From Anthoceros angustus (taxonomy: Eukaryota > Plantae > Anthocerotophyta): a DNA stretch of 64,000 nt. The notes beneath the pieces are model-generated. The model had not been told where the DNA came from, made no database searches, and saw nothing but the letters and a program-made list of their open reading frames with translations. Where the stretch lies: NCBI GenBank assembly GCA_010909165.1, contig MU008166.1, positions 992,001 through 1,056,000 on the forward strand. The letters run 5' to 3'. The position numbers and the translations under genes are program-made. Positions 5,201 through 30,613 of the stretch are shown here, piece by piece. Each line of letters opens with the position of its first letter. The stretch's first letter is position 1.

Positions 5201-5292
5201 AGGGAAATCGGTTAGGGTTGATATCACAGAGGATAAATATTTATCCCATCATGCAGTCAAAAGGCTTGCTCTTCGCATGGTAGGGACCATTA

Positions 5293-6171: not shown

Positions 6172-9100
6172 CTACATGTGGCCTTGCGTCCACTGGGGAT
6201 GCTTCTCATCCCCCACTAGAAAACTATGCACCAACCCGTTCCCGTCTGTCCACCAGCTCTGACCTGGCTGCTTCCATGCCCTAATCCTTTTTCTCCTTGA
6301 TTGCATCTTCTCTGCGCACTCCCACATCTGGACCCCGGTGTATATGTTTGCCATTAACACATACGCTGAGGCATCTTGGCTGTCTAGCTTCACTGTTTCA
6401 TTGAAAGCAAGGAATCCCACCTCGACATTGCACCACTTTCGACAAGCACCTAACAGAGTGCGCCAAACAGTGGCATTCGGCAGTCCAGGCATTTTTGTAA
6501 CTAAACCTAGTGCCTCATCCAGTTGTCCTGCTCGACCCAGGAGATCCACCAAGCATGTGTAGTGGTAAACCGTGGGACGGATGCCGTAGTGTCTGCTCAT
6601 AACCTCAAAATAGTCTCGGCCCTTGTTCACTAGACCTGCATGACTGCATGCTGTCAATACACTAAGGAATGTGATGGAGTCTGGCCATATGCCATTCTCC
6701 TTCATTCTCCGGACCAAGTCAAACACCACTTCACTGTCTCCTTGACAGGTGTAGCCTGCAATCAGTGCATTCCAGATGACGACGTCTCTTTCAGGCAACA
6801 TATCAAAAACTTGCTGTGCATCGACTGTACTCCCAGTCTTTCCATACATGTTAATCAAGCTGCCAGCAACAAACAAATCAGCTTGAAGCCCTTGTTCTAA
6901 AATCTGTGCATGTAGCTGCCTACCGAGATACAAAGCTGCCACATTTGCACATGCCTGTAGGAGGCACAAAAATGTCACGGTATCGGGTACAGTCTTGCCT
7001 TCTGCTTGCATAGCATTGTGCAGATGAAGGGCTTCCTGCCCCATACCCTGCTGGGAGTAATTTCAAGCATCATGGCATTCCATGTCACCTTATTAGTTTT
7101 TGGTCTGAGTGTGTCAAACACACACTGACTGAAAGCTTCAAGTCGCCGTGACTTGGCATACATGTTCACCAAACTGTTGGCTACAAACACATCATCTTGA
7201 TGTCCTTGTTCCCTGATCTGCACATGAAGCTCCTTCCCCTTTCCCAAAGCAGGGGCACCCACACTTGCACATGCCTGCAGGAGGGAGACAAATGTTACGG
7301 GATCTGGTACCGTCACTCCTTCTTCTTGCATAGCAATGTAGAGACCAAGAGCTTCCTGCAACATACCCTGCTGGGAATACCCTGCCATCATGGCATTCCA
7401 GATTACTAAATCTTTCCGACCAAGTTTGTCAAATACTCCTTGAGCATCTTCCAAACTCCCACACTTCGCATACATGTTCACCAAACTGCTTGCTACAATC
7501 ACATGAGCCTCATGCCCTTGTTCTCTGATCTGAGTATGAAGCTCCTTCCCATTCTCCAAAGCCAGAGTGCCCAAACTTGCACATGCCTGCAGCAGGCATA
7601 CAAATGTCACAGCATCAGGTACGGCCAAGCCTTCTTCTTCCATTGTGCGGTAGAGACAAAGGGCTTCCTGCCCCATGCCCTGCTGGGAATACCCTGCAAT
7701 CATGGCATTCCAAGTCACCAAATCCTTTTGACCAAGTCCATCAAACACACTCCGAGCATCTTTTAAGTTTCCACACTTTGAATACATGTCAATCAAGCTG
7801 CTGGCTACAAACATATCCACATCAAGACCTCGTCGTTCAATCTGAGTATGAAGCTCTTTCCCCTTGTCCAATGCCAGGGTGCCTGCAGTTGCACATACCT
7901 GCAGGAGGCACACAAATGTCATTGAATCTGGTGCAACAATGCCTTCTTCTTGCATCGCACTGTAGAGGCGGAGCGCTTCCTGCCCCATGTCATTCTGGGC
8001 ATACCCTCCCATCATGGCATTCCATGTCACAACATCTTTTTGACTAAGTCCATCAAAGACTCTCTCAGCATCTTCCAAGCTGCCACATCTTCCATACATG
8101 CTCACCAAACTGTTGGATACAAACAGATCACCTCCATATCCTTGTTCTCTAATCTGGGCATGGAGCTCCTTTCCATTCTCCAATGCTATGGTGCCCAAAC
8201 TTGCACATGCCTGCAGAAGGCACACAAATGTGACTGAATCGGGTAAAGCCATGCCTTCTGCTCTCATTGCACTGTAGAGAAGAAGGGCTTCCTGCCCCAT
8301 CCCCTGTTGGGAATACCCTCCTATCATGACATTCCACGTCACCACATCTTTTACGACAAGACTATCAAATAGTCTCTGAGCATCCTCCAAGCTGAGGCAC
8401 TTTGCATACATGTTCACCAAACTGTTTGCTACAAGCACATCAGATTCATGTCCCCGTTCTTTGATTTTCACATGAAGCTGCTTTCCCTCCTCCAATGCCA
8501 CAGCACCCATACTTGCACATGCCTGCAGAAGGCAGAGAAAAGTCACAAGATCGGGTTCCATGCTTTCTTCTAGCATAGAACTGTAGAGACTGAGAGCTTT
8601 CCAACCCATGCCTTGCTGTGAGTACCCTGCTATCATGGCATTCCACGTCACCACAGTTTTTTGACGAAGTCCCTCAAAGAGTATCTGAGCAGCATTCAAA
8701 CTGCCGCACTTTGCATACATGCTCACCAAACTGTTGGCTACCACCGTATCAACTTGATGTCCTCGTTCTTCAATTTGAGCATGAAGCTGCTTACCCTGCT
8801 CCAAAGCTGGGGCACCTATACTGGCACATGCCTGCAGGACGCACAGATATGTCACCGCATCTGGTACAGCCATGCCTTCTTCTAGCATAAGACCATAGAG
8901 ACGAAGGGCTTCCTGCCCCATGCCCTGCTGGGAATACCCTGCCATCATGGCATTCCAAGTGACCGCATCTTTTCGACCAAGTCCGTCAAACACTATCTCA
9001 GCATCTTCGATGCTGCCACACTTTGCATACATGTTCACCAAACTGCTGGTGACAAAAACATCAGCTTGATGGTTTTGTTCTCTGATTTGTGCATGAAGCT

Positions 9101-11543
9101 GCTTCCCCTTCGCTAAGGCGGGTGTGCCCACAGTTGCACATGCCTGCAACAGGCACACAAAAGTCACAGAATCAGCTACAGCCATACCTTCAGCTTGCAT
9201 TGCACAGTACAGATGAAGGGCTTCCTGCCCCATGCCCTGCTGGGGGTACCCTGCTATCATGGCATTCCACGTCACCACGTCTTTTTCACCCAGACCGCCA
9301 AACACAGTCTCAGCGTCCTTCAAGCTGCCACATTTTGAATACATCCTCACCAAACAACTGGTTACAAACTCGTTAGCATCATGCCCCTGTTCCATAATCT
9401 GTGCATGAAGCTGCTTCCCCCTCTCCAAAGCTGGGGTGCCCACACTTGCACATGCCTGCAAGAGGCACGCAAATGTGACAGAAGTGGGTACAGCTGAGCC
9501 TTCTTCTAGCATAGCACTGTAGAGAAGAAGCGCTTCCCGCCCCATGCCCTGCTGCAAATACCCCGCCATCATGGCATTCCATGTCACCACATCTTTTAGG
9601 CGAAGTCTGTCAAACACTCTCTGAGCATCTTCCAAGCTCCCACACTTTACGTACATGTTCACTAAACTGTTGGCTACAACCACATCAGCTTCATGTTCTC
9701 CTTCCTTGATTTGCGCATGGAGTTGCTTCCCCTTATCCAATGCCAGGGTGCCCAAACTTGCACACGCCTGCAGGAGGCACACGAATGTCACAGAATCGGG
9801 CATAGCGATGCCTTCTTCTCGCATAGCGGCATACAGACGTAGGGCTTCCAGTCCCATACCCTGATGGGAATACCCTGCTATCATGGCATTCCACGTCACT
9901 GAATCCTTTTCACCAAGTCCATCAAAAACCCTCTGAGCATCCCCCAAGCTGCCACAGTTTGCATACATGTTCACCAAACTGTTAGCTACAAACACATCAG
10001 CTTGGTATCCTTGATCACTGATCTGAGTATGGAGCCGTTTCCCTGTCTCTAATCCCATGGAGCCCACACTTGCACATGCCTGCAGGAGGCAGACAAATGT
10101 CACAGAATTGGGTACAGAGATGCTCTCTTCTTGCATGGCACTGTAGAGACGAAGGGCTTCCCGCCCCATCCCCTGCTGGGAGTACCCTGATATCATGGCA
10201 TTCCAGGTGACCACATTCTTTTCACCAAGTCCGTCAAACACTCTCTGGGCGTCCTTCAAACTGCCGCACTTTGCATACATGACCACCAGACTGTTGGCTA
10301 AAAACAAGCTACCTTGATAGCCCTTTTGTTTAATCTGCGCATGAAGCTGTTTCCCTTTCTCCAACATTGGAGTACCCACACTTGCACATGCACTCAGGAG
10401 GGATGCAAACGTCACGCAATCAGGTGCTGCAATCCCCTCTTTCAGCATAGCACTGTAGAGACCAAAGGCTTCCTGCCCCATGCCCTGCTGAGAATACCCG
10501 GATATCATGGCATTCCACGTCACTACATCCTTCTGGCCAAGACTGCCAAACACTCTTTGAGCGTTTTCCAGGCTGCCACACTTGGCATACATGTCCACCA
10601 AGCAACTCGAAACGAACAAATTAGGCCCAGCGCCATTGGCCAACACATCAGCATGCACCTGCTGCCCAGCTTTCAAGTCAGATCCCCTTGCACAAGCCTG
10701 AAGGGCTGCAACAAACACATGCCCATCTGGCTGCACCTTAGACCTGCGCATCCGATGATACAATTGTATTGCCTCCTTGTCTTGACCGTGTTTAACATGC
10801 GCCGAAATTATGGCAGACCACGTGAAGGAATCCGGTTCGGCAACGGCTTCAAACACGTCCATAGCATCTTGCAACCTGCCATGAGCAGCATACATTCGCA
10901 GAAAGTGGAAGCCCAGGAAGGTATCTGATTGATATCCCCTTTTCACAGCAAACGCATGCACGCGGCTACCCAGAGCCACATCCTGCTTAGCCACACATTT
11001 CCTCAAGACAGCATATAACAAAGATCCGGAAACACAATGGTCTGTCTGCAGACTAACTTCCAAAGCCTCAACAGCCTCGGTGAGATGGCCCTCTCGACAC
11101 AGCCATCTCACAGTTTCAGCCGTCACGCCCCCATCGTAACCTGCAGGCCTCCGGCGGTCCGGCACATGCATGGTCCTGTTGGAAGCACGACAACCCATCC
11201 CCGCATCCAAAGCAGCAAGCTGCGAATCCACCCAAGCTGGTTTGTACAAGTTGTTCAACCAGAGGACCTCTTGGGACTGCCGGTGCCGGAAGTCAGCAAG
11301 GAGGCCCTTCCCATTTTGCCTGTTATCCCACCAAAGTGCTGGGTCCCAGAAAAATTGTCGCCACAACTTCTCCTGACGACGGGCCTCGCCGGAAAACCCG
11401 TCCCCAGACAACCATCTTCGTGGACGGGCTGGCTGTCTTGCAAAGGTGCTGCATCTCCCGACTTGGTTGTGCGCCATCGGTTGGCTGCACGAAGTTAGAC
11501 GAGCTGGAGCTCTTTCCAGAAAACCCAGAACCCCAACAGCCAT
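6172..11543 (-). CDS. PLS-class pentatricopeptide repeat protein (organellar RNA-editing factor type): ~13 P1L1S1 triplets + P2L2S2 + E1/E2 + truncated DYW of the 'WW' PG-box type; one frameshift at ~7050-7150
   Basis: ORFs 6975..11897 and 6172..7044 join into a single intronless array with repeating VVTWNAMIAGY / VTFVCLLQACA / NSLVNMYAKCGSL motifs. The C-terminus reads HYTCLVDLLGRAG...WRTLLGAC...SAYVLMANIY...KQPGQSWW...HSFLVGDEKHPQ. The most plausible ATG is MAVGVLGFLERAP at 11543, which resembles a transit peptide. Confidence 0.93.
11217..11366 (-). other. OSB-type 'PDF-motif'-like segment in the PPR N-terminus
   Basis: LWRQFFWDPALWWDNRQNGKGLLADFRHRQSQEVLWLNNLYKPAWVDSQL matches the W..FF..P..WWDNR..K.....DFKHK...E.LWL.....P.WV pattern of organellar ssDNA-binding (OSB) proteins. 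Confidence 0.7.
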
Positions 11544-11626
11544 CGCTGCCACAACAAGCGGATGCAATACGCCCGAACACGTTGCTGAACACCATGATGC
11601 GCTCCTCAAGGTCGTCTGCCATACTG

Positions 11627-11692
11627 CACAAGGTGGCCTATGTAGTATGTAAGGTGTTACCACAAGGTGGCCTATGTAGTATGTAAGGTGTT
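11627..11692. repeat. Perfect 32-bp direct repeat (34-bp period) upstream of the probable PPR start
   Basis: cacaaggtggcctatgtagtatgtaaggtgtt at 11627 and 11661. Confidence 0.9.
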
Positions 11693-14449
11693 GTAACAGG
11701 GACCCATTGTTTCGTGTTTGGCCTCTCTTCTTCGAACTGTGTGTTGTCAAGCCGAGAGTCAATCGTCTATGCACGCACGCCTCCCCAATGTCCCATCCGT
11801 AGAGAGCACCCACGACGGCCAGTGCTGTTACGGACCACCAGTAAACACCTGAAGAGCATGGGGATGGGGATGGGGATGGGGATGGCGAACAACACACTAA
11901 TGGGCTTCAGCTAGCTAAACGGGAATCCCGTTTGTGGGTCGAAATAGGATCGGTGAGACCATCCGGGAGGAACAAGACGGGGAGTATGGTGTACCCATCT
12001 GCCAAACTTTCTGCAGCCTTCCTCTCACAAATGCGTCATATCGTATGTGACCATGTGACCATGTCCATGACATGCCAGATGTTATCAGGGCTGGCATCCG
12101 CGGCCGCAGCTACACCTCCTCGCCGGACACGGTCGAATTGTTCACCTTTCTTCCTGCTTGGTAATGCCGGGATAAGTGTATTTTCCCTTTGATTTTTAAA
12201 TAAGATATGTAATCCACTAAAAAACATTCCCTACCACTTGCTCCTCGCTAGACATGGCAAGAGTCTCATTCAGGTACGAGTCTAACTCCCTCACTCTGAT
12301 GCAAAGTGCAAAGCAATTGAATTGCACAGAGACCTGAGCTGGTCGCCCGCTACTTCACCGTGCTTGTAGGAGGAAAATCATGGGAAATTCCGAATTCAAC
12401 CTCTAGCGCCCACACTTATCCTAATCATTATCGTGAGCATTGGTTTTGGCCCCATGAGATCTCCGATTGTCGATCATGCGAAAATGGGTCATGCTACACA
12501 CTTGCTCACCTCAAACCAACTTTTCCTACAGACAAGGCATCCTCTCACTCTCCCTCAAACAAAGAAACCATACACCCACTCGTGGCCGCCTCCAGGGAAA
12601 AGCTAGTCAACCTCCGACCTACAATGACAACAGATGCTCGTGAGGCCCCCTGCCCCTCCCCACGGGTTGTAGGTAGGCCCACAATGGGCGACCAAGGACC
12701 CCGAATCTCAATCAAGTGGTTACTCACGCCTCACAGCTGCTGTCTCAGCTCCCTCATTGCCACTGGAGCCGACTTTTCAGCATGATTGGGACCCTCCCTT
12801 AGGCTCTACCTTGGGCCTTATGCTACTTTCTGCACCTTTCCTCTTCACCACATCCTCACACACCCACTCCACTCTCTACACACCTACTCCACTACTCCAT
12901 TGTACTCCACAACCTTCTACTCTAACACCACCCTCTGGCTCATTGATTTCGATTTCATTTTGCCTTACGATAATAATGCCTTACGAGGTCCACACCGCCT
13001 AGGGTCCACTCTTCAGAATCAACAAGTTCTTCCTGGGCTGCTGTCTAGTCGGGATTTGCACTGCATACAATGAGAACCTCCAGAGTCTTTTCCCGAGTCT
13101 CACCCTCAAGCCGTAGAGTTTCAGTAGGCATCGGCCACCCACCTAAAAGCTAAAGCAATTTCACAGCAATCATTCACAAGGAGCAATCTCTCACCCCTGC
13201 TGAGGTACTCCGCTGGGAGCGAGCCCTCCGCTAATTTCACCACCGCAAACCCCCCTACCTCTACGTATATTGCGTTAGCTTGTGCTGCTTCAAGACGAAA
13301 TTCCTTCACAAGGAGCAAAGGACTCGCGAGTTTGGGAGCGCAAGATGCGATTCTTTACTTCTCAAACTTGCCCCCTCTTACGGGTAGAGCCCATCACTGC
13401 GTCAAATTTCTTCCCGGCGCTAGACGCCTCAACTGACCCCAAGCTTCCTCTTCTTATTCTAATTGTTATTTATCGGCAAACATTAACTTTTGCTATCACG
13501 TTTGCTAGCTCATTCCTTGCAAATCCTATTATTTTGATGTAGTTCGCCTACCACTTGAGCCTTAATGGTCCCTTTAAAATGTGACTTTTTACCTACTCTA
13601 TGTTCCTACTTACAGTTGTCTCTTGATGAGCATTTAAGCGTTGTCTTTTTACTCTATGGCTACCTCCCCCAAAAGGAAATACCCACTCAAGTGCTTCCAT
13701 GCTCACAAACTATGCTAGGTCGATGGGTTCTTGACTAGACCCCCCTTTGTCTCCCTTGGCAGTTGGTTGCCCTTCCCCAAACAGAATGGACCTTGCCCTC
13801 TTAGCTGCAGGTTCATCTTCTTCATTGGGTCCTTCCCTTCGTCGAGGAGAAAACATGGTAATCCTGTAAGGAGGTTAATATACGAACCCCCTTTCGGTGT
13901 TGCAGAACCCCTTTGACGAAACCTACTCGGTACCTAAAACACGTAAAGCAATCACAGTCTCCTTACAATGGACCATTCTTGGCCCCCTAAGTCATGAACA
14001 ACACAATTGAGGCATACACACAACGACAATAGTAGCGGGCACGGATGAAGCCATGATGGAAGAGGGACGTTTTTAAATGTGCACTTGCAAAATGGCACCG
14101 ATAGACACATGGCATAATGAAGTTTATGTCTGAATCCTAATACATTGGATCCGGTTACTCATGCTATTCGGTCTCAACTGGGCCCCGAATAAGCGTAATC
14201 TAAAACTACAGCTAGGTTTCGACACGCCCTTCTTCACAAAACTGCCATTCTCACCCAAAGCGTTGTCCGTTGTTAACCTCCGCTTGGACGACGACGTGGA
14301 GGTTGCCATATGGTATCCAGCGTTGTCCTCCAACACGCCTGCCTCGGTCTTCATCCTCCGCACTCAAAGAAACAACTTGGGCCTTTGAACAATCCTTTTC
14401 ACTTATACAAACCTCCTTTGCCTGTAAATCGAAGGGCCTGCGATGGGGC

Positions 14450-17142
14450 TCAAGGTAAGCTCTTCTTCAAGATCCGGAGAACCTCGATCCGTGGATGCCT
14501 GGGGATGTATCCAAGACACCGTAAGTCCGCCTGATGGCGATACGCTTCCACATAGCAAGGCTCACTGCTTGTGCCACTTCCCGAGCATGCGCCCACCACC
14601 CGCCTCCTTCTTTTGAGAAGGTCTTGATCAATTTCATCATCGCCCAAGAGGCCTTTGGTATGGGCATACCACCAACTTGTCATGGGACACACCGCTTCTT
14701 TACCACGTTGTCATGTCCTATGACGGACCTCCCATTGTTGAAAGTGCCATGCATGGCATTCGCATCATCGAGCTCGATCCTTTGAACACCCATCTTCAAG
14801 CCCCATCCGATACCACATACTCCATCGCTTCAACCCCTATCATTGCTCATGTTAGTTTTATCCCACACGAAGACACCAGCCACCCTTCTTACACCACCGC
14901 GATCGATTCCGTGACTGTGGGCTTCCTCCACTCCATGCATGACAATCATGCGGAAGTCTTCGAGTTTTCTTGAAAACTGCTGAAAATCAGACTCAACATG
15001 GCATCCATCCGCTTGTCCATAGGCCCAATATCAAAGCCTCCGGGCACATCCATGACTGGTGTACCTCCTCACCAAGGTAGCCCGCATCTAAAATATCTCG
15101 CTTCCACTTGGTAATGAACCTCCTTCTACCAGAACAAGAAAATGTGCAGCCCTTCATGAAGATCAGATCCGCCATTACCGCTCGCCTTCCAAACTCTTCC
15201 AATTATTGATCTCGAAAATGAAATTTTAAAGTCCTCCGCATTTTCTGCAAGTTGTCTATATCCTTCAATTGCTGCAAAGGGCAAAAGAGTATAAGTGCAT
15301 ACACAGCGAATGCAATGCAACAGTATGCACTGTAGATCTCAAAGAGGCGCCGGCCCTCAAGGCCCCTTGAGTTCTATGGAGTGGACAGGCGCCGGCCGGG
15401 CCGGCCTTCAAGGCAAGTCCGGTCCCCACATCACATGTGGAAGTGGCCTCGCCACCGCCACCGCAAGAACGTTAGGTTTGTAATGCATACATATGAGAGA
15501 AGAAACGATGGGTAGTATGGCACACCTTCCCAAACGCCGTCTGAACCGAGCTATCATTTCACGAATGCAAAGGATATTCCACCTAACCTCTTCGAATGAT
15601 GAGCAGCCCAAGTGTTTACCATAGCCACTTGTATAACATGAAACTTCTTCCGTAAGGTAATCTCATCATCCATTTTAGGTCGATAATACAACACCTTCTG
15701 TACTGATGAGTATCCGACCGCACTCTCCAGGAACTTTGAACGATTTCCACGTTTTATAGCATATCCTTCTTAAATAAAAGGTCAACAACCTGAGCCTCCT
15801 CTTGTACCTTGCCTTTCTTCTTACTTGTTCCAGAACATGTTTTTCCGCAATTCAATTCTCCCATTTTGAAAATATTCGATCCACGTTGTCCCAAACCTTC
15901 CCTCCTGCTTGGCAATGCATAAGATGTGGGTCCGATTGTCCACCTTATTCCGCTTGTAAACATCGCCTTCCCGACCTCCGCGTCCTCAATCAAGCCCAAT
16001 ACAGATAGGTTGAATTTCCAATTCATGGTCATCCGACATCATCTCGCCTCGCAATAAATTCGCCCTCAAGTACCGACCGCTCAATGAAGGACATCTTCTT
16101 CCTTTGTTCGACATCGACAGTGGTGCTGGTACTGATTTCCGCCACCGTCACAATATACATGAGCTTCCACATATTGGAAGCGTGTTTTCCCCGGAGATAT
16201 ATCTCGCCAAATGTTTCATGGTCGCAAAGGTATGGTTCCCACCAAGAACGCCATAACATATTTCTTCGCTCGAACCTTTCCATCCAACTTGCGAGGTTGT
16301 CACACCTGCCGGGTCGATCATGCAAAGGAGAGGCAACACGCCTCCTCCTCAATCCTTCCTTCGATATTACACGAGCCAAATAATTTGCCCATGCCTCGCC
16401 CACTCTCCTTATCACAAGATCCGTGTAATATGGGATGCTGGTTTCAAATTCTCCAACTTCACTACTGCTTCGAACCACCTTCTTGGAGTAAGCCGAGTCC
16501 CGACTGTCAACGGGTCTCAGATCTTGATAGCATCCTCCACCTTTCCTCGTCTGTAAGAACATGAACAAGGGCAATGTTTTCCTGATGGTCCCCTTTTCCT
16601 TTATCCCTCTTCGACTTCTTCTTCCCACTCACCTACTACTACATCGCCACCGTCGTCGCTAGCAGAAAGACATCCGTAGAGCCGCTTTCGCTTTTCCACC
16701 GCTCCAACACATTGCCCCTGCTCCTCTTCCCTGGAGCGCCCGGCCGGGCGCCTCCTCCTCCTCCACAGTGGCGAGAGGGGGGCGCCCGGCGCCCTAGTCC
16801 ATCTCCACCCAACGGAATCGACAAACCAGCGTTTGGGGTCAGTCTTCCCCATCCGCCAGGGGGCGCGGCGGCGCGATTGTCATCCGTGATCGCGACGGTA
16901 GGAACACGTGAAGCCCCAATGTCTGCAAAGTTGAGGATGTCATCTTCATCCCTATCCTCATCTTGGTCACCTGACCCCTCTCCATCTGAAAGACCTAGCA
17001 CATCTGGGATCGGTCCATCCTCCTCGTCGGATGGTCCCAGTTCACTATCTGCATCCTGGTGCACAGGGCTATCTGCATCATCCTCATTTCTTTTTAGCTG
17101 GTCTCTCGCTCTCCTCATGGACAATACGCGCCTGTGTGCCAT
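14450..17142 (-). pseudogene. ParB/Srx-like + beta-class N4C/N6A DNA methyltransferase fusion gene, paralogue 1 (frameshifted as assembled; intron ~15272-15490)
   Basis: Motifs across frames, in order: GEAWANYLARVISK..PL.MIDP, then VLGGNHTFATMKHL (16230-16243; ParB-like), VMDVPGGFDIGPMDK (15042; motif IV position), FVWDKTN, MEYVV, MHGTFNNGRSVIGH, PYQRPLG, MMKLIKTFSKEG, ACSGSGT (~14570-14592; SAM-binding motif I). Confidence 0.75.
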
Positions 17143-17559
17143 AATAGTCTCCGACACCTTTCCACAAACACCATAAATTTTGAAGGGGGGGAATATACAA
17201 ACTTCCTTACAGGAAAAAATAACCCCTTTGACGGAAAAGGCACCATCCTCAAATTGCGGAAAATGGCTGGTTTGAGAATACAGACACCATCCGTATATAC
17301 AAACCCATAGCGGAACACCAAACTGAACAGGACATCCTCTACACGAACCCCACATGCTGCCGGCCGGCCGGCGCCATTGCGGATTGCAAACAAAGCACAT
17401 CGTAACATCAAAATTTCAGAAAAGTCACATCGTGAAATTTAAAAGGGTTCGGAAACATCCGGAACATGCAGGTGTTCTCATACTGGCAAAGCTAAACACC
17501 TACTCCATAAGCTGCAGGAGATTTGCTGTCGGTGTCTCGATGTTCTATCGTGAGGGCTT

Positions 17560-20135
17560 ACATGTGAGTCGACCATTTCATCCACCGCAACTGAATCTAC
17601 AACAAGTGCCAAATTACGCAAGCGCTCCATCTCCTGTGCGTCAAAGCTATCATTCTCATCTAAAGCCACACAGCAACGCAACTAGTGTCGTAGTCCCACT
17701 GCCTGAGCATGCATCAATAACCGAGTCTCCCTCCTTGGAGAATGTCCTCACGAGTTTCATCATAAGACCCAATGGTCTCTGGTATGGGCACACTACCAAC
17801 TTGTCATGAGACAGGTAAACCTATTTCTTTGACGGTAGGGTGTCCAATAACGGATCTTCCATTGTTGAAGGTCCCGTGCATCACATTGGGCATCATGGCA
17901 GCCCTGTCCTTCGCACATCCATCTTTCACACCCCATCCAACTGTAACGTATTCCACAGTCTCAAATCCTCCTCATCGTTGTTCATGTTAGTCTTATCCCA
18001 AATGAATGACACCAAGCCGCCTTTGGCACACCACTTCGCATAGCCTCCCTTACCGTATGGGCTTCTTCAACACCATGCATGATAATTCGAAGTCGTCATT
18101 TTCCGTTTTCTCCGAAACTTTGAAACACACCCCATCATTGGATAAATCCATTCGTTTGTCCATTGGCCCGATGTCAAATCCACGGGAACATCCATGACTA
18201 GAAGGGTGTATTTCCTTCCCTCAAAACCCACGCATGTCCGAGCGTTGCGGCTTCCACCATCGACTGTTTCTCGACGGAACATTGAATATCATGGAGTCCT
18301 TCTTCCAAGTCCTTGTCCAAAGCCCGCTGCTCATTCTCTAAGCCCTTCCAATTATTGATCTCGAAAATGAAATGCGGAAGTCGTCGCGCTTTGTCAAGAC
18401 CTCCACGTCCTTGATTCTGCCAAAAACAACTTAGAATCGCTCAAGCACACAACGCTATGCGTGGATGGCGGCCGGCCGGCGCCCCCTGATCAGCGTGGAG
18501 TGCGGGAGGCGCCGGCCGGCCGCCCTCACCTGCGAGCGAGGCGAGCGCCGGCCGGCCCCAGTGATCCATGGTGGGGCGCCGGTGGCCCTGAAATGAACAT
18601 GGAAAGAAGGTGCGGGAAAATGGCTTACCTTTCCGCAAATGCCGTTTGGAATCGCGAGCATTTCATCGAGTCTTTGGGGATACTCTGCCGAACCTCTTCA
18701 AAGAGAGCAACCAAGGTGTTTGCCATCGCCACTTGAATAATATGGAATTTCTTCGAAGAGATATATCGTCATCCATTCCTTTCGGTCAATGAGACACAAC
18801 ACTTTCTGTGCGGTGATAAGTATGTCTGCCCACACTCCCATTGGAATCCCTTGAAATGATTTCCAAGGCTTTGCAAGCATATCTTTTGGCTTCACATACG
18901 AGTCTATTTTGTTGGCCTCCTCGGTACTTTCCTTCACCTTGCTTGCTTGTCTTGCTATCACATGCTTCTTCTCCCAACTCCGCTTCCCACTTGGTAAAAA
19001 TCTTGTCTACATTTTCCCATACCCTACCCTCTTGTTTCGCATGCATAAAATATGGGTCTGTTGTCAACCTTGTTACATTTATAAACATCATCTTCGTGCT
19101 TCATCATCCTCAATAAGCCCCAACACCTTATACAAGTTGAATTTCCATGTCATGGTCATCGCACGACATCCGTTTCGCAATAATCAATTCATCACAAATA
19201 CCTCACCGCTCTATAAAATTCATCTTGCGCCGGACATAGTATTATGGTCGTGGCGGACTCGCATCTCTGTACGTTGAGACCACAGTACATGAGCCTCCAC
19301 ATATATTGAAACCGCTTTTGCGGAGATGTCGCAAGATGCTTCATTGCCGCATAAGTGTGGTTTCCTCCTACTCCCATGACATATTTTTGGCCGAATCTAC
19401 GCATCTAGCTTTTCCATGTCATCACACTCCGGATCAATCATACATAATAAAGGCCCTCTTCAATCCTCCTTTTTGATATAACACGCGCCAAATAATTGGC
19501 CCATGCTTCATCCACCCCGTGTCATGCATCGGTGTAGTGCGATGCGGTCGAAGGTTCTCCAATTTCACCAACTGTTTAATACTACCTTCTTCATATCTTC
19601 TCGACCGTGTCGGTCTTCATCCGGATAGCTTCGCAATCCTCTCCGATCTGTTGTCACATGAGCGGTGGGAATGTCACCCACATTTTCCACCCTCTGCGGT
19701 TGCCTTTCCTCTTTGCTTTTGCCTTAGGATGGTCCTCTCGTCATTCCTTCTTCTCCCATCTCCTTCAAAAAGCCTTCCTTTTCCCTTAGGTCCCTCCCTC
19801 CCAGGTCCTTGTTGTATCATGAGAGGCGGCGCCGGCCGGGCCCTCTCCTTCCCCGCCTTGGTGGGTGTGCCCGGCCTCACCCTTGGCTGCGAGCGCCGGG
19901 TGGCCGGGCGCCCCTCTACCTCTCCAGCCGATCAGCAACCCGGGTTTCATAAGGCATGAAAACCCCGCATCCTGTCCTCCTGCGCGTCCGAATTTTCTTC
20001 ATCGGTGTCCGGATATCGTGTCGGGCCATAGTCTTCATCCTCGGGCCAAATTGCCCTCCTCGTTCTCATTGTCCTTCTCTTCCTCCTCATCACGCACTCG
20101 GCTCTTGCGCCACGCATGACCCTCTGTCTTTGCAT
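17560..20135 (-). pseudogene. ParB/Srx-like + beta-class N4C/N6A DNA methyltransferase fusion gene, paralogue 2 (frameshifted as assembled; intron ~18418-18628)
   Basis: DEAWANYLARVISK..LLCMIDP; GVGGNHTYAAMKHL (19354-19368); KYTLLVMDVPxGFDIGPMDK (18184); FIWDKTN; VEYVTVGW; then in one frame PYQRPLGLMMKLVRTFSKEGDSVIDACSGSGTTTLV (~17680-17790), followed by RCCVALDEND..RL. Confidence 0.8.
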
Positions 20136-20178
20136 TGTTTGTGTGATTTCCGCACACGTCCGATGAATGCATTCCCCA

Positions 20179-21192
20179 TCACGAGCCTGCAATGAACAAT
20201 GCTCCTTTGTTAGAAGGCGGCGGAAAGCATAAAAAACGAAATAGGGTAAGGTTTGCGAATACCGATTGCTCCCGCCTGCATTCCCGAAACAGCTGCAAAA
20301 GCCTGGCAGGTTCGCATTTCTTGATAACAAGGTTGTTGAACCTGATTTCGAAAGCTCTGTATAGCTCGGGACCCTGGGGCACCGCATCGAATTCTTGAGG
20401 CCTTGTAATGCACAGTAACTGTGCTACTGGATCCCCATTTGACATGTCCAATGTTGCCCACACTAGCCACCCTGCCCTTGCCGTTGATTGTGCATCCTTG
20501 TAACCCATAATCCACGCGCTTGCAGCGTCAAAACATGCTCGTCTTACGGTTGCGGATCCTGAACAACCATCCAATCCTTGTCCAAGATCTTCACGCATCC
20601 ATCGTGCTCCAGGCCGAATGTAAATGTCTCCTCGGCGAGAAGGAATAGGAGCCACCCTCTTCCCACCCTTCTCCCCTTCTCTCCATGGCCTCCTGATTTT
20701 GTTGTGCTTGCCTTGCCGCCAGCTTCCAGACTTGAGTGCCTCACGCTGGAAGCGCCCGCTGCCGTCAGCTAGCATGTCCTCCCGACGGTCTTCCATCATC
20801 GGCATGCGCCTTCTCGCCACTGTCTTTGCTTTCCTCGCTCGCGTTTTCTTCGTCTTCTGCAGGCTCGGGGATCCGGGTTCGTCGCCCTGATCCTTCTTGC
20901 TTCTTCTTCCCATCGCCATCACCTTCAATTCAATACAAGAGCCATTGATGGGCCTTCCTTCTGCTAATTAGCGTCGCAATTCTACCACAAACACGTCAAT
21001 TGCACATGCAAACTGGAAAGTGAGAACCCAAAGCGAGAAGTTCATCTCCCTCGCCCAATTTCTCGTTGCTGCAATCAAGGGGTTAGAGATGGCGCTCCGC
21101 ATTCGTCTCCTCGAGGCGACCACACCGCGCTCACCGCTCCCTCTTGCACAAAGCTCAATTGCTCGCCGTTTGAGTGACCAGTTGCGCTCCAC
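20179..21192 (-). CDS. Unknown cargo ORF(s) of the element (basic, NLS-like N-terminal part; globular-looking C-terminal part)
   Basis: 249-aa ORF 20179..20928 plus an upstream ORF, co-oriented with and just upstream of MTase paralogue 2. No family recognised. Confidence 0.3.
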
Positions 21193-21499
21193 TCCGGTTT
21201 TGTTTGCCTAAACTTGCTATTTAAGCGCCTTTGTCGTTCACCTTTCCACCTTAATACATTTAGGGTTTGGTTACTCCAACTAGCCGATGGTTCGAACCCG
21301 GTGGAACATTATTAACGCCATCTTGTACATACAACGTCTACCGCTTTTTCCCATTGCGTTGGGTTTAAAAACCAAACATAATGACTTTCCGTTACTTGCC
21401 TCGCAAACATTAGGAACTTAACGACGTTTTCAACAATGGTTTTATATGGTTGGTGGTATATCAAAGCGGCCTCCGGAAGGCTTAGACATTTCCAACCTA

Positions 21500-24400
21500 T
21501 CTAATGTTGAATGAACCTTGCCTTCTTTCATTCCTCCACCGTCCAACCTCGGAAGGCGCCCAACAAAATGCTTCGCCACTCACTGCATAGGCGGCGATGT
21601 CGATCACTGCTTTGTCGAACGCCGTCGTCTTGGATGCGTTGTCGAGGGAGACATGTCCTCATTCCCCGTTTGATTGTGCGGGCATACTGCGGATGGTGAG
21701 GTCAATCCCAATATGAAGAGAACTTCCGTGCAGACGAGGAGAAGCGGACTGAATGCCCGGCGTCGCATGTTCCAAGACATCTCTCCCCACGCACTACGGG
21801 AAGGTGTGCTTTCACATTCTAATGGAGGTTGACTTTGTGAATTTTATCCTCTAAGTAAAGTCTTTGCATACCAGTACGCCGATTCGGAGGCCGACATCGC
21901 CTCGGCCTCCCTACCATTCCGAGGTGCCTGCCACGGACACCAAGAAATCTTAACCGGTATGCCGCCCTGGAGGGATCCCCATGCAAACAACGGTGTGAGC
22001 AAGCAGCTACCGCTAGAAACCGCCACTCCCAAGGTGGGCTCCGAATGCGTAGAGGCAGCTTGTTCATGCGGTGGAGTCCGCACGCACCATCGCAGAAGAA
22101 TGCGGCAATAAATGAGGCGATTTCGAGCACTCCGAGATCGACGCCATCTTATCACCCCAAACCATGAGTGAGACTTTGGTGTCTGCGAAAACTACGAGTG
22201 TCCGGTGCCAAGAGGCGAGCTGCGGGAGTCTCAATGAGGAAATGTGAAGTGGAAAGCATCAACATTGATTTTGAAGGCATGTTGCAATCGGATGTGTCTC
22301 CGCAGTTGACAAAAGAAAGGTTTCGTGAACAACGATATCGCTATTTACGGATGGGGAGGCGGGGCAGAAACATTTTGGAATCCTCATACGGGTTGTGCGA
22401 CAAGAGCTGGGTAACGCAAAAGTTGTTACTCATCTTGGGGCGGATCCTTTGATCTTGCTTGCCTTGAGGAAGAGTGTATTGCCTCGGCCACAGCGATATG
22501 AAGAGTTGAAGAGTAGAGTCATAGAATGCCGTGGGATGCTATGAGGCCGAATCCAAAAAGATCTCACCATGCATTAAGTGCAATAGCCTGGATGGACAAT
22601 GCTTTCCTCAACATGGTGAGAGACTTCCAAATATCGAGGTCTTCAACCTACCGACACATACACAAAACTAGAAATTTGGAGTGAATATAGGCATTGTGAA
22701 CAAAGAGGTCTGATGTGACTCGCTGGTTCTTGAAGCTATGGAAAGGGCACTTCAACAGGTAAAGATTCCAAAGTCTAGATTCTCTACTTGCTCGCTCTGC
22801 TGGATTGAAAACAACTATACGAAATACAATCTCAAAGGTTGATCAAGGTAAGTTACATTCTTTTCCTTATGTTTTCCATCGAGGGTGGTTGACCGTAGGC
22901 CAAACCCTCAATGGCGATTTGTATAGTATGTGTCAATATGCCCCCCGCTTCGGTGGGTCGGTGGGCGGTGGCCGGCGCCCACCATCTCACCATGTCCTTA
23001 GGATTATGTGTGGGTTCCCACAGTCATGGGCCGGGCCCCGTTCTAACCATGCATGTGCCTATCACATTGCTTGGGCCCGCCATGCAAGGCTATTACCATG
23101 TCGACCTTGCGAATGAGGTCGGTCTCGGCGCCGGTGGCGGCGCCCCACCGGCGCCTCCTTCCGCTTGAATGCGACAAATATGTTCCGCCCATTATATCCT
23201 TTGTTGTCGATCATGGGGGCGAGGTGGGGGTGAGGAAGGAGAAGTTGCGGTGTCCATGACATACATCCATGTGATGCTTACAACGTTGATTCTTGGACAT
23301 CATACTATGTTTTTATCTTGTAAGTTGTCAACTTTAAAGGGACTCAAAAACTATGTTGTGAATATGTTATATGCGCATCAAGCGACCTTTGGTGAAGATG
23401 ACAAAACACCGGAGCAAGAGTTATGTTGAACCACATAAGTATATGTTACTATGTATCGATGGCATGGACGAAGAAGAGAGATACCGCACATGTTGAGGTG
23501 GCCAAAAACCTAGGCGAAATGCATTTCCGTTCACGTGGTGCATGATCCACAACTACACCCACAAAGCCACGGCGTTTTTCGCCAACCTCGATGCCAATTT
23601 GACTATCGCGTCATTCAAGATGTCATCCACAACTATGATGGTGTGCTGCCCAAAGTTTTGTATTTGCAACTTGACAATACATGTCGGGAGAACAAGAATC
23701 AGCTATTATTTGCATATGAACATGCTCGTTGATATGGGCACGTTCGAAAAAGTGAAGGTGGGATTCCTTTGGTTGGTCACACTCATGATCAAATAGACGG
23801 ATGTTTTCGCTTCCAAAAGCCTTAAACACAAAGAAGCGCAGCGCTACCCGTGACACACATTGAGGCCTATACTCCCTCTCCGGTGAAGGTTACAGTGGAG
23901 GTTCAGTTCCGGACATATATGGCCAATCTGGGCGAGGAGGTGAAGTATGCGCAGCGGTGAAAAGTTGAATAATCATCATACCGGCACGTTCAAAATTACA
24001 GCGAGGACAAACGGCGCGGCAGTCACGATCATCGAGCAAAGCGGTATTCAACATCTCGCTTTGGGAAGCGGAGGCGAGTTTGGAGTTCTTAAATTTCGTT
24101 CCGATGCCATATGCGCCTTTGATGTCCTTACGTGCGGGATAAAAAGGAACATGAGAACCACTGTGGTGTGGCTCATTTGAAGGATGGGTTTGGAATGCGA
24201 CCTTATGTAGTAGAGTACAAGTGGTGGGAAGAATGCAGGTGACGACGAGATTGTTGTTGGAAAACCACATCGGCCTTGTTACGGACCGTCCTTGGAAATG
24301 GTTCTCCGTCTTTGAGGAGGAAGAGCAGCCTTCATGTACGATGAAGCTTTGCTAGAAGAAGCATTGTTGAGGAGCTTCCCCAGCGAGATATGTCAGGGCA

Positions 24401-24810
24401 TATCAAAACATTGGAAGGCAGCAGCGTGAAATGGCGCTTGAATGGCGATATTAAATCAAAAGGAATGTTCTCGCATGCCATGCACCAACATACAACAAAC
24501 CTTTACGGATTGGGAAAGTCACGGACGTGAGTTGGATGCACCACAACCTCACTTTCTTATCCACTGTATCGGACGAGATCATCTGACGTCTGGGCGGTAT
24601 GTGGAGGAATATATACTACGAGGAAGAGGTAACAAGATGGAGACTAGGGAAAAAGGTAATAAGGTATTTTATCCCAAAAACATACAGGTGGTCTATGTGA
24701 ATGATCTGTCATCCTTTATTACGGTTTTATTTTGAATGCGGAAACATTTGTATGCGGTGGACACAAAAAGGCGATCGAGGACAAATTGAGCGGTGCGGAT
24801 TCATACTGAC
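21500..24810 (+). pseudogene. Sola-like DDD/E transposase, copy 1 (frameshifted; probable intron from ~22848 to ~23370)
   Basis: WFLKLWK..F..VKIPKSRFSTCSLC (CxxC, ~22730-22800); IDGMD (23455-23469); LYLQLDNTCRENKNQ; GFL.VGHTHDQID (23775-23798). The start is approximate. Confidence 0.75.
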
Positions 24811-27800
24811 CCGGTCAAAGTGTGGCGGAGGATAGCGATGACAATATTGACGCTGGGCCAGCGATGACGAAGGCGTGAACTCGGGGGGACTAGCTATTGA
24901 GTGTGACTAGCCTCAACCATTCTCATTAGGGGTGTATGGATGTGGTCCCCACTTCATGTCGATGGCGCCCATCCTTTCCAACAAAGCGTACATGGCTGCG
25001 GTGGCCGGCGCCCTATTCCTCTTGCATTTGTTAGTGCATAACTTTATCTGAAATTGTAGAAGTGCAATGGCGGTTGCACATACCACTTGTTTTAGGCTGA
25101 ATATTGACGGACTATGTCCTGTGAATATGTTGCGTGAGTCCCGCAGTTTAGGGTATTTGTCTCCAACACCACGGCATGCAACATGACCCCCCACTGCAGG
25201 GTCCTGTTCTATTTCATTCCAAAGGAAGTGGTGACAATGCGGATAGCAAACATGTGGAATGTGCCCTTGTGGACAGTGGCGAGGGCGCCGGCCAGCCGGG
25301 GCCCCCTCATGCAACATGCCACGCCATACCACAGTGACGTGTTCCACTTCATTCTCCAGGAACTGGTGGCCAAGTGGATAGCAAACATGTTGCATGTGCC
25401 CCTCTACACATGGCGAGGCGGGGAGGCGGCCAGCCAGCGCCCCTCCCTCCTGCACTGTAATAGGCGAAGGATCACACATTAAACCGAAAAGCGAAATTTT
25501 CTTCCCACAATTTTGTTTTATGGATTGAACACATGATTTCATGACCCTTCCATAGTGGCGTTGGAATCGCGATGTGATAACTATTGCTAGACCGGCAAGC
25601 AGGTGTGCATTGTGGGTATTGTTTTGGCGAAACAAAGCGGTGTGAGAGGGTCACCCTTGATCATATATACCAACGGCTCGTATGATCGGGGCGGACCCTT
25701 TTTTTTTGTTTCCACAATAGCTGAACCCACATCTTTTAGACCCATCACCAACCCTCTTCGGTGATTATTCACAAAAACCCCCATCGAGCATATTCCCCCT
25801 TAAAATTTATGATGTTACTTTAACTTTTAACGATAAGTAAAGCTCTTCCTACACAGGGTGGCTGCAAAAGCATCCAACAGCCAACATGATGTAAATCATA
25901 GGAGTAAGCACATTACAATGGACACAAACTCAACAAAAAGGATTTCACATGTGAAGGGCAATTTTTGTACTTCTGATCGATTTGCCGCATTGCTTTAGAA
26001 ATACCTCGACAAGCTTCAGGAGGACCACATTTCTTAGCATAGAAACCCATGAATGACCCGAGCTCCCTTCCGCCCCTATACATTTGAGTCTTGAATCGAC
26101 ATCAAACTCTGCAAGGGCTTGTTGTGCAAAAGCAGTGAAGCGGATTCTTGCCGTCCATGTCGAAAGTCGCTTCCTTTACTACCCCATCCAGCCCTCGCTC
26201 TTTGGTTGGCGGTGCTCCGCAGCAACCCGCAATCCTGAATTTCAGCGGTGGAGTCAGGAAAACGCATTTTCCATCCTATAAAAGCTCTGCATCACCCATG
26301 TCACCATCGAGCGATTGGCGGGGATCGGTGAGCATTGAGGATGTGCGAATAATCACGGTCTCCTCGTATATGAAGAGGCGAAGGTAGGCGCTGTAGCCAG
26401 TATACAGAGGCTTTTAGCCATCTTCCCTCCGGCTTCCTCTTTCCACTGTCGTACTAGCGCCAGACGTCGAGGCCATGGTTGAAGCTTTACTGCCGATGCA
26501 TGTACCCAACTTTGGCTTTTTACCCAGTTCTTGATCACAGTCGCAGCCAGTCAGTCGCCACTCCACAGTCCCTCACTGCTGCGCACTGCCCATGCTTTGA
26601 TTTACTCCACACTTTACGGACTTCTACCTTGGGGCAGGAGAATTCGGTGGCAGGCTAGCCGCCCGCATCTCACGCCACATCCTTCTTGCTCCATCGCCCG
26701 CTTGCACGTTCTCCTGCAGCGAGGCCGGGGAGGATTGGCTAAATTCGTCGAAACAAGATTGCATCACCCTATACAAATTGGGCTTGGGGATGGAAGATGC
26801 GGAGGTCTCGCCAACGCGGGGATGCCTTGTACGCAGCTCCAATCTGAGAGAGAAAGCAGGCTCTCTCCTGAGCGCACCCGAAGATCTCTCCTCCTTCCGC
26901 ATGCGCCGCGCCGCCATAGCGGTGAGTGGAGTCCTCTCAAGCCAATTTTGTGGGCGTTACCAATCGCCCAGGCGGAAACCGACTGAAAGGCAAACACCCG
27001 TTACCGTAGGAGTCTGCTTAACCCCGGCCAGTTAAAGGGTTACCTCGACCCGCCATGAGCCAAGATTAGAAACCACGATGTCATGTGAAAGGCTTGGTGG
27101 TTATGGGCCCTTATTCTCATATGCACCTATTTGACCCATTGCGTGACTGTCCCTAAATCCCGGTGGAGGCGGTAGTACATTGTCATTCTTACTCCTTGCA
27201 TGCCTTTTGCTGCCGCGATACTCAACGCCTCATTGGATTTCCTCGCTAGATTATATGCCTGATGTGGCGTCGTGGGCGTGGGTCACTAATTGTTGGCGGT
27301 CCAGGGCCAAACCACTTGGGCCCAGTGTTCTCTTTGCAAGGAATCTAGCAAGGCCACGGTGGGCGAGGGGTGGTGGGTTTTAAGAAACAAGCCTCCTACG
27401 CCCTTTTAAAGGAGTCCAAAACACTTGCGTTGCAAAACCTCAGGAGGGTTGTATGGCCGATACTGGCGTGCAAATATATGAACTTGCGGTTAACAGCATT
27501 GCATTATGGCACCAAAATGATTGGAACATGGCTTTCAGTACTTTACCTTAGCACTTACGTCCTCCATATAAATCGTACATGTGTATTAACCATGGCGGCG
27601 AAATGCGATGGTAAAAATGATCGACGATCTCGCCGTCCTCGCATAGGAGTTAGTGTGTTATGGTGTGCAGTAGATCTTGGAGTCGCTGTAGCATACTGTG
27701 GAAGTGATGATATTAAGCACTTGTGCGGGGAAAACGGCAGCAGCGTCGAGAGTTGTCTTAACTTGAAGCTATCTTGCACATGGTATTCAGATGGCCTAGC

Positions 27801-27899: not shown

Positions 27900-28800
27900 T
27901 TAAGCCGTGATAGGTATATGGGAAAGGCCGAGACATACACGAGGTCCCAGGAGTTGCTAAGATAGTGGACCATGCGATGGGGGAAATTGTGAGCGGGGCG
28001 ATTTCAGGAACACCTCAGGAGGATCGATGTGCAAGATCGACCCCTTTCACAGAAACGGCGAAGTTATTCTGAGGGGACGTCGGAAGGACTCGTGCATTAT
28101 ATGTCAGCAGATGGGCAACCGGCGATGTCGTTGAGGAAGAGTGGGAGTGGACTGTTGTATTAGCGACTCACAAAACCTTGTTGCAATCAGTGCTTGCGAG
28201 GTGTGAAAGAAAGATTTCGAGAAGCGGTAAGGTATAGATTCATTAGAATGCAGACAAAGCATGAGGAACATTTCCTTGAGTCTCTAATTCCATAGCGACA
28301 AAGGCCAATGATGAGCAGGTGCCCGGTACATGAGTCAACCTTGTGTTGAGTTACGTATAGTTGTATTTCTAATCCTGCATAGAAAGTAAGTCCGAGAAGG
28401 CGGTTTGACCTTTGGGATCTTCCTCTCTTGTAGTTGCATTTCCATAGCTTTAAGAACCAAGCGTATGTGACATATTTGAGCCGTGACCCTTTCACTCTAA
28501 GTTTTGTCACAGGTGTGAAGACCATATTTCTAATTTTGTACGTGTCGGGAAGATTGAAAACCTCCACATTTTGGGGAGCCTCGTGACCATGTACATAAAA
28601 AGTACTTTCCATCAAGCTATAGCTTCTCGCGCATGCTGAGAGGCTGCTTGTATCAGGGTTTTGATGCGATCAAAACCATCCACGGTGAGTGCTATGAAAA
28701 GAACCCTAGCCTTTAACTCCTCATACAGTGTGTCCCACACAATAAACTCTCCCGAATGCCTTCCGTAGACAACAACTGCGTGATCGTCCTTGTCAGAACC
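27900..28800 (+). pseudogene. Sola-like transposase copy 2, 5' exon; the segment ~28320-28800 is inverted
   Basis: 28130-28300 (+) aligns to 22230-22400. 28330-28800 aligns on the minus strand to 22440-22850 (YEELKARV/YEELKSRV, NVEVFNLPDTY/NIEVFNLP, WFLKLWK). Confidence 0.7.
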
Positions 28801-30613
28801 TTTTTGGGCGTGAACTACCCATGGTTTGTCGGCCTGAGTCAGTCTTTGGTCACAGGTTTCAAGTTATTCGTCTTTGGTTGGAGGTTTGAAGCGCCCTTAT
28901 CTGGAGGAGGTTTAGAAGTAGCCTACCGGGTCGGCGCCCTTATATCCAGCGGAAGAGGGAGCAGGCCAAGTGGCTCAGCCGAGCAGATGCCTAGTCCATT
29001 GGGGGGCCCCTGCCCTCCCCACTCCCCCTACTAGAAAAGGCAGCCTATGTTACACTTTATGTTAAGATTTGGACCCCGGATGTAACACTTATGTTGCAAT
29101 TTTGGGGTCATGTAACACTTTTGGGCGCTTGTTACACTTTGGCTTGGAAACCAAACCGGAGTGTTTGTTGCAACCATGTTGCAAGTGTGTTACAATTTTG
29201 TTGAGATGAAGTGAGAGGCGCTTTTGTCCTCTCTCAAGATTGCAACAGTTGCAACATATAAAGTGTTACAAGAAAAGTCTTGTAACACTTTTGGAGGCTT
29301 GTAGAACCTCCTCCCCATCTACCTTCCTCCTTTACTACATTTACCATATAGAATACTTGGTTTCCTTATTACCTCGTATGAATACATATAAATAAATACA
29401 TGTATGCATACCTTTCAGAATCTGGTATTGGTAATATTCCATATACGATAATTTCCTATGACATACGGTTATATTTCATTTTGTATAAAACATTATCGAC
29501 ACCGCTAACGTCGTAAATTGTACACGTCCGGGATACTATACTTTGTATTCATCATTCACAACACGAAAACATGCGGATACATACATCCCACATTTCAGTG
29601 ACCTATTTTTGTGTCCGTCGCAACCTACCTTCTCTAGCGGGCGTTACGTGCGGCTTGTCCCCATGCCCATCGGCTTCTTGCCATGGCTCGCCCACCCTTC
29701 TTATCATTACTACTTTGTCCTTCCTAGGAGTTTGCTTTCTTGCCGTGGAGGTTCTTTCGCTCCATACAGGCGCTTCTTCATTTCTAATTTCCTACTCCTC
29801 GTATGCATGAGAAGGAAACCTCCTACAACCCCTGTTTTGCGATTTTCTTCCTCCCTTCCTCTTGCGTCCCGCGACCTTTCCCTTTCCATCGCATCCACCT
29901 CCCTTCCGGTCCCTCACGCGCACCGGTACAAACATCGCATGCATGCCCTTCATGGCATATAGTGGTGTGCAACGACCTTCAATTGCTTACCTTCGCACCC
30001 ATCTTGTTTTCTTATGTACCTCTTGCCCACAATGCTCCTTCCATCCTCGCTCTTTCCTGTGGCGCCCTGTCTGCAGCCGCTATGCCTCCAGCACCTCCCC
30101 GCTTTCCTCTTTCGGCCTCCACCTTTTGTCACGGTGGCGTAGCCTCCAATGGGGCCCCAGTGGAGGTCCATGCTTTCAACATCGGGTCGAGGTGTGTGTC
30201 GGCACGGTTAGGCACGCCCTCAATGTCGTCCCTTCCTCATACTGCGCCATTTGTTTTGGCGTTCGCCATCAACTGTACCCCTTTTGCCTCTTTCTCCCTC
30301 CCCTCGAAATTCCCTCATGGCTGCCACTCGCCTTTTGGCCCCACCACGACCATGGCGCTTGCGGACCCCGCCTCTCCTCCATTCGCCACCGCCTCTCCCT
30401 CTCCCACCCCATTTGTTCACAGCGCTGGACACATGCCCCCCTTTGGTGACGACACAATTGCCTCCCCGCTGAGCAATTCTCATCCGCCCTCCGATTCCAT
30501 CCCTCATGTCTTTCACTCGTCACTCCCTCGACCCCATCTCCGTCCACAATGTGCATTACGCGTCACTGGCGATGGGCACCCTCACACGCCCTTTACCAGG
30601 CCCTCTTGACACA

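Follow-up and report, generated by a model that had tools for sequence, protein, structure and literature searches.

Nested Sola1-type transposons with genes for a putatively ParB-like, beta-class methyltransferase-fold protein in the hornwort Anthoceros angustus

The locus and its nested elements

The stretch of Anthoceros angustus DNA studied here (assembly GCA_010909165.1, contig MU008166.1, positions 992,001 to 1,056,000 of the forward strand; 64,000 nucleotides, hereafter the window) contains two nested Sola1-type transposons, an outer one termed E1 (13852-47430) and an inner one termed E2 (17167-25816, 8650 bp). E2 carries gene B and transposase 1, placed back to back, and E1 carries gene A and transposase 2; the insertion of E2 within the 5' part of gene A splits that gene. 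The unit plan is the same in both families: a terminal inverted repeat (TIR), the cargo gene on the minus strand, the transposase on the plus strand and a second TIR, over about 8.7-9.3 kb (Table 1). A first-pass annotation had described two minus-strand paralogues standing in tandem beside one divergent Sola-like transposase. The paralogues, their motifs and the opposite-strand pairing with a transposase were borne out, but the tandem array and the shared transposase were not, since gene A belongs to the outer element and has a transposase of its own. That a single gene had been duplicated in tandem next to one transposase was rejected, as the nesting is shown.

The E1 ends are flanked by an exact 4-bp target-site duplication (TSD), and the E2 TIRs, of about 28-30 bp, pair with gaps. 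A pattern AACA..TAA..AAGG..AATAT is common to the TIRs of both elements, and a fuzzy pattern built from the four element ends matched those four ends only. No unusual folding was seen in the TIR hairpins. Just inside the left TIR of E2 (17183-17214) there is an inverted 78% match to the left TIR region of E1 (13862-13893). A separate mini-element at 13852-17214, suggested by that match, was rejected, because 17167 is the start of the E2 TIR and gene A resumes past E2. The right subterminal region of E2 holds a 133-bp tandem duplication (25175-25443, 74% identical).

E1 is further disrupted by a CACTA-like insertion, an inversion and a tandem duplication. At both edges of the inversion in transposase 2, at 28296 and 28825, stands the 7-bp inverted microhomology CGACAAA, and the sequence of transposase 1 is continued across the inversion junction; the catalytic exon bears a 408-bp tandem duplication (44785-45592). 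The CACTA-like element was rejected as the carrier of the cargo, as it has its own TIR and TSD and sits inside the transposase 2 intron. It shows a TnpD-like piece by eye (35394-35942, minus strand; no Pfam match), a 90-bp tandem array at about 39230-40060 and one exact copy, at 37108, of the repeated motif described below.

Membership in Sola1 is indicated by the TIRs, the 4-bp TSD of E1 (AGAA) and a DDD transposase of Sola1 type, recognized by motif order and by a DUF7869 match of the transposase 1 piece 23514-23729 on the plus strand (E=2.8e-9). Compared by eye, the motif series CSLC, IDGMD, LQLDNTCRENKN and VGHTHDQID is that of the Sola1-1_Ec32 transposase of Ectocarpus. The target AGAA, a single site, departs from AWWT, the preference of classic Sola1 elements given in a passage of PMC3845634 that cites Bao 2009. 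Each cargo gene thus lies inside TIRs and opposite its own Sola1-type transposase, as expected of the transposon cargo that the first-pass annotation had proposed. This linkage is present twice in the window, once in each of two families with transposases that share 64% identity, so that chance adjacency is very unlikely. We hold the transposon anatomy and the cargo status of both genes with high confidence.

The cargo genes and their predicted protein

The six-frame translation shows the motifs of both genes spread over shifting minus-strand frames. Those of gene A are WANYLARVI (16365-16391), MIDP (16310), GGNHT (16229), DVP (15042), VWDK (14857), QRP (14649), FSKEG (14605) and ACSGSG (14573); those of gene B are WANYLARVI (19477), MIDP (19430), GGNHT (19354), DVP (18184), IWDK (17992), QRP (17773), FSKEG (17728), ACSGSG (17695) and CVALD (17658), the last being clear in gene B only and degenerate in gene A. 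Candidate GT-AG introns occur at equivalent codon positions in both, which agrees with the earlier suggestion that the genes would be spliced.

The two genes were compared by frameshift-aware pairwise alignment of the natural copies, with each break marked. In the N-terminal exon 301 codons align with a protein identity of 63%, and in the methyltransferase exon 233 codons align with one of 67%. Codons with a single difference divide into 75 synonymous and 36 nonsynonymous in the N-terminal exon and 72 and 16 in the methyltransferase exon, whereas neutral simulations passed through the same aligner gave about 33 and 58. These ratios indicate that both domains have been maintained by purifying selection while the two families diverged.

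Library searches were made with exons and pieces one by one. The longest clean stretch of gene B (17659-17820, minus strand) matched Pfam N6_N4_Mtase with E=3.6e-8, and the Pfam, PHROG and PDB matches of the cargo were to beta-class enzymes only. Three family-level relatives were found (P0005, P0006 and P0022), all from run SRR33208241; scans of metagenomes and viruses with the methyltransferase alignment were blank. The three relatives, of DLPRG type, lie at loci L001, L002 and L003, two with open frames over the domain. In frameshift-aware alignment the last exon of gene B scored 178 and 203 against P0005 and P0022 (47 and 43 when shuffled), and that of gene A 106 and 115 (46 and 57 when shuffled). 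The AlphaFold model of P0005, with a mean predicted local distance difference test score of 50 and 70-82 in the core, matches M.MboIIA, CcrM, M1.HpyAVI, RsrI, N4CMT and PvuII. Motif IV standing ahead of motif I, the PF01555 match and the beta-class fold, modelled for the relative P0005, together uphold the beta-class assignment made in the first-pass annotation. The S-adenosylmethionine (SAM)-binding motif DxCxGxG is preserved in all family members. Motif IV reads DVPGG in gene A; the three relatives all have DLPRG, and gene B, read over a gap of 1 nt, probably has DVP[R]G.

In the N-terminal domain GGNHT occupies, by eye, the place of the ParB DG(H/R)RR motif. Homologue searches with N-terminal pieces were blank, and an ESM Atlas match of one piece to PMD, with only 150-155 shared features, was taken as chance.

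Table 1. Positions of element ends, genes and other features in the window
Feature	Position	Strand	Remark
Left TSD of E1, AGAA	13848-13851	.	same letters as 47431-47434
Left TIR of E1, 30 bp, begins AACATGG	13852-13881	+	29/30 complementary to 47401-47430
Gene A last exon, methyltransferase domain (DVPGG ... VWDK ... QRP ... ACSGSG)	14450-15271	-	frameshifted; 3' end approximate
Gene A candidate GT-AG intron	15272-15525	-	two GGCGCCGGCC sites; splice-like ends, codon position as in gene B
Dispersed GGCGCCGGCC sites in Sola DNA	15346-47020	.
Gene A middle exon: conserved N-terminal domain, ParB-like by eye (WANYLARVI, MIDP, GGNHT, YVEAH), and acidic/low-complexity linker	15526-17166	-
Left TIR of E2	17167-17196	+	pairs with 25789-25816
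Gene B last exon, methyltransferase domain (DVP[R]G across 1-nt gap, IWDK, QRP, DACSGSG, CVALD)	17600-18416	-	3' end approximate
Gene B candidate GT-AG intron	18417-18628	-	four GGCGCCGGCC-like sites
Gene B middle exon, conserved N-terminal domain, putatively ParB-like	18629-20186	-
Gene B candidate intron, 76 bp	20187-20262	-
Gene B 5' exon, basic N-terminus	20241-20928	-	open reading frame 20179-20928; homologous to 25953-26384 (-)
Transposase 1 (E2), Sola1-type	21580-24800	+	frameshifted; intron ~22848 to ~23330; IDGMD 23455, LDNT 23670, GHTHDQID 23775
Right TIR of E2	25789-25816	-	pairs with 17167-17196
Gene A 5' exon, separated from the rest by E2	25953-26384	-	aligns to gene B 5' exon, 93 vs 40-42 shuffled
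Transposase 2 (E1), 5' part	27997-28302	+	aligns to transposase 1 22116-22383, 95 vs 33 shuffled
Inverted piece of transposase 2	28296-28831	-	171 vs 30 shuffled on minus strand
CACTA-like element, 15.2 kb	29026-44241	.	in transposase 2 intron; perfect 29-bp TIR starting CCCTA; 3-bp TSD TCC
Transposase 2 catalytic exon (IDGMD 44583, LDNT, GHTHDQID)	44520-46450	+	64% identical to transposase 1, 447 codons
Right TIR of E1 and TSD AGAA (47431-47434)	47401-47434	-	inverted-repeat pairing with left end

The repeated motif and the state of the copies

When up to one mismatch is allowed, a 10-bp motif, GGCGCCGGCC, is matched 23 times in the window where 3.8 matches would be expected, a number reached in none of 100 shuffles. 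The 18.4 kb of Sola DNA contain 17 of these sites (10 exact), whereas the other 45.6 kb contain 6 (1 exact). Introns, in the two cargo genes as well as the two transposases, together with linkers and the subterminal DNA at the right ends, hold most of the sites. Such a layout is as expected for binding sites of an element-encoded protein, and GGCGCCGGCC is put forward as a candidate for that role, or for a target of the protein; we infer that the protein binding it may be the cargo protein. Base composition gave no signal of CpG protection inside the elements, the observed/expected ratio (0.79-0.88) being as in the CACTA-like element (0.87). The ratio in the transposable-element parts is higher than in the left flank (0.54). 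CAG/CTG is depleted across all transposable-element parts of 13852-47430 (observed/expected 0.42-0.73).

The frameshifts could reflect decay of the elements or errors of the consensus. Aligned exon pairs show 25-44 frameshift marks but only 1-3 stops. With an aligner that penalises stops, simulated neutral decay with 8:1 substitutions per indel left 3-11 stops and 47% identity, and simulated read-type error left 1-5 stops and about 61% identity. Between near-identical duplicates there are 14 gaps to 18 mismatches in one case and 76 to 105 in another, with transitions about as frequent as transversions. A host pentatricopeptide repeat (PPR) gene runs clean for 4.8 kb, is garbled over about 100 bp where a duplicate exists, and is clean again. 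Nanopore reads underlie the assembly, and the Illumina reads used to polish it were restricted to a k-mer depth of 60-165, a filter that could leave repeats under-polished. Collapse of CWG to CG as a source of the frameshifts was rejected here (4 observed, 3.7 expected). The small number of stops, the fit to the read-error simulation and the differences between duplicates favour consensus error over decay for E2, and we consider it somewhat more probable than not that the frameshifts of E2 are long-read consensus errors. E2 may thus be intact, while E1, with the nested E2, the CACTA insertion and the inversion, is dead by structure.

The PPR gene just mentioned (6100-11897, minus strand) is of the PLS class with an E-type C-terminus; its garbled, frameshifted patch, at about 7060-7150, is probably an assembly error, and a partial duplicate of the gene, 91% identical, lies at 5293-5708. 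A direct duplication of about 2 kb (8-2028 and 3216-5241), in which stretches of 100% identity alternate with gap-rich ones, resembles an unpolished overlap. In the other flank there is a NAC transcription factor gene (61397-63327, plus strand; Pfam NAM, E=2.5e-28).

Known systems, proposed role and alternatives

The literature describes transposon-borne genes of ParB-like/methyltransferase type from brown, red and green algae. The closest design is that of Ectocarpus Sola1-1_Ec32, a Sola1 element with a divergent gene for a ParB-like domain and an N4C/N6A methyltransferase (PMC12477816, Genome Biol 2025). Its transposase shares with those of E1 and E2 the C-x-x-C region, the first Asp in xDGxx, (V/L)DNTxxENKN and VGHTHxQIDQ; its accessory gene lies on the opposite strand, its termini start with AAC, nested insertions occur, and its 4-bp TSD, biased to end in A, also departs from AWWT. 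The layout of a fusion gene inside TIRs, on the strand opposite to the transposase, is found in both E1 and E2. The Ectocarpus element differs in size (21.5 kb, with a 282-bp TIR, versus 8.7-9.3 kb and 30 bp), and E1 and E2 are set apart by their land-plant host; the D-V-P-R-G motif and the GGCGCCGGCC sites may be further differences. In Bostrychia, too, a DNA transposon carries both a PF01555 methylase and a ParB-like domain for binding, in the accessory genes PAG2 and PAG3 of Plavaka (EnSpm) elements (bioRxiv 10.1101/2025.02.11.637652), and PAG3 has been proposed to bind the element itself at sites repeated within it; however, the superfamily is another one, and the two domains lie in separate genes, the methylase being fused to SET and the ParB domain to a 2OG oxygenase. 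In the ParB-terminase loci of phages, ParB-N6_N4_Mtase fusions have the same domain order as the putatively ParB-like cargo protein, and the P0005 model matches phage clusters of this kind with a template modelling score of 0.54-0.55 over the methyltransferase part. They differ in that sequence alignment is confined to the C-terminal motif-I region (35-55%), that two ParB_N domains tested pairwise gave no match to the N-terminal domain, and that the plant genes appear to bear introns. Marchantia DN4MT1a/b and bdelloid N4CMT share the beta-class amino-methyltransferase fold in a eukaryote, but they are host genes with a canonical (T)SPPY motif and shown N4-methylcytosine (4mC) activity, whereas the cargo of E1 and E2 is transposon-borne with D-x-P-R. 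The first-pass suggestion of a link to DN4MT1 and N4CMT finds no support in this comparison, neither (T)SPPY nor a host-gene context being present here.

E1 and E2 represent two related Sola1-type families, and we propose that their cargo protein, in which a predicted DNA-binding (ParB-like) N-terminal domain is joined to a beta-class amino-methyltransferase fold, targets the DNA of the element itself. The cargo protein would bind the dispersed GGCGCCGGCC sites and would probably place an amino-methyl mark, 4mC or N6-methyladenine (6mA), at or near them, and the mark would keep the element chromatin usable or blunt host silencing by 5-methylcytosine (5mC). In the history of the locus, E2 inserted into E1, which the CACTA-like insertion and the inversion broke further. 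The general proposal is, in our judgement, moderately probable; that the self-marking is catalytically active falls slightly short of an even chance; and its fullest form, an intact and possibly mobile E2, with frameshifts due to assembly error, whose active enzyme has D-x-P-R as a new catalytic motif, binds GGCGCCGGCC and marks the element's DNA with 4mC or 6mA against 5mC silencing, is unlikely. Several results weigh against the proposal. The canonical catalytic (D/N/S)PP(Y/F/W) form of motif IV is absent from A, B and the relatives, and with it the aromatic residue by which N4CMT stacks its target base, the tyrosine of SPPY (the motif of Marchantia DN4MT1 is TSPPY); activity and target base can therefore not be read from the sequence. 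The ParB/Srx likeness claimed in the first-pass annotation stands as a resemblance by eye, but profile and structure searches did not support it: Pfam, PHROG, NCBIfam, PDB, ESM Atlas and pairwise tests, all with short frameshifted pieces, yielded no ParB/Srx match. No TSD is seen at either end of E2. The contigs of P0005, P0006 and P0022, of 3-4.6 kb, contain no transposase, no GGCGCCGGCC and no match to the N-terminal domain. Finally, 27 related DUF7869 transposase loci from metagenomes, most on short contigs, have no methyltransferase, and the methyltransferase cargo is therefore probably lineage-specific among such transposases.

The absence of the canonical motif suggests an alternative in which the methyltransferase domain is catalytically dead and serves as a DNA- or SAM-binding structural helper of transposition, which binds internal sites, pairs the ends or shields the DNA. 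All relatives have the non-canonical D-x-P-R, and the N6A-methyltransferase domains of DIRS1 have been described as likely inactive (PMC4738411); yet purifying selection has kept the catalytic Asp, the second Pro and all of SAM-binding motif I, and Arg could take over the aromatic stacking role. We regard a dead domain as somewhat unlikely. If the enzyme is active, its substrate could be another one, such as RNA, rival elements or the DNA of the host in general, with the GC-rich GGCGCCGGCC being a binding site of the transposase or a host factor and unrelated to the cargo. Eukaryotic amino-methyltransferases have switched to RNA several times, the contigs of the relatives lack GGCGCCGGCC, and the D of motif IV is typical of adenine enzymes, so that GGCGCCGGCC, which has no adenine, is itself no 6mA target. 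However, the closest folds are DNA enzymes and GGCGCCGGCC is concentrated in both elements, including the introns of both genes. We consider this option quite improbable.

The state of the copies raises a different alternative, namely that all of them are long-dead fossils with real decay and no expression today. The structural death of E1 holds at any error rate, and the many frameshift marks and the CWG depletion of the transposable-element DNA point the same way, whereas the scarcity of stops, the substitution pattern of the duplicates, the better fit of the read-error simulation and the garbled patch in the host PPR gene argue for error; we consider the fossil state possible, if doubtful, and it would bear on this copy and not on the design of the family. 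That the gene pair is a chance adjacency, or the contig contaminated or chimeric, is barely credible. The inversion and the tandem duplications could be assembly artefacts, but two copies of the divergent pair are present, each enclosed by TIRs of its own, the TSD of E1 is exact, the flanking PPR and NAC genes are those of a plant host, and neither the N-terminal domain nor the TIR matched any bacterial, phage or viral locus.

E1 and E2 are land-plant representatives of a published transposon design. The basic design is not new, and the novelty claimed in the first-pass annotation was overstated, as the pairing of Sola1 with a methyltransferase had been published for Sola1-1_Ec32; the self-marking hypothesis has likewise been published for Ectocarpus (PMC12477816) and Bostrychia (bioRxiv 10.1101/2025.02.11.637652). 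No paper was found in the literature on land-plant copies or on a functional test of any such gene. The present analysis resolves the nesting, puts numbers on a candidate recognition motif and gives evidence that the frameshifts could be artefactual. Should they be errors of sequencing, many of the copies that have been judged dead in this assembly may be alive. Since selection has maintained the gene in two plant families that have a candidate motif in common, the published idea of self-marking becomes a concrete assay, and an active, self-marking E2, if true, would be the first case in plants of a self-marking system shown to be encoded by a transposon.

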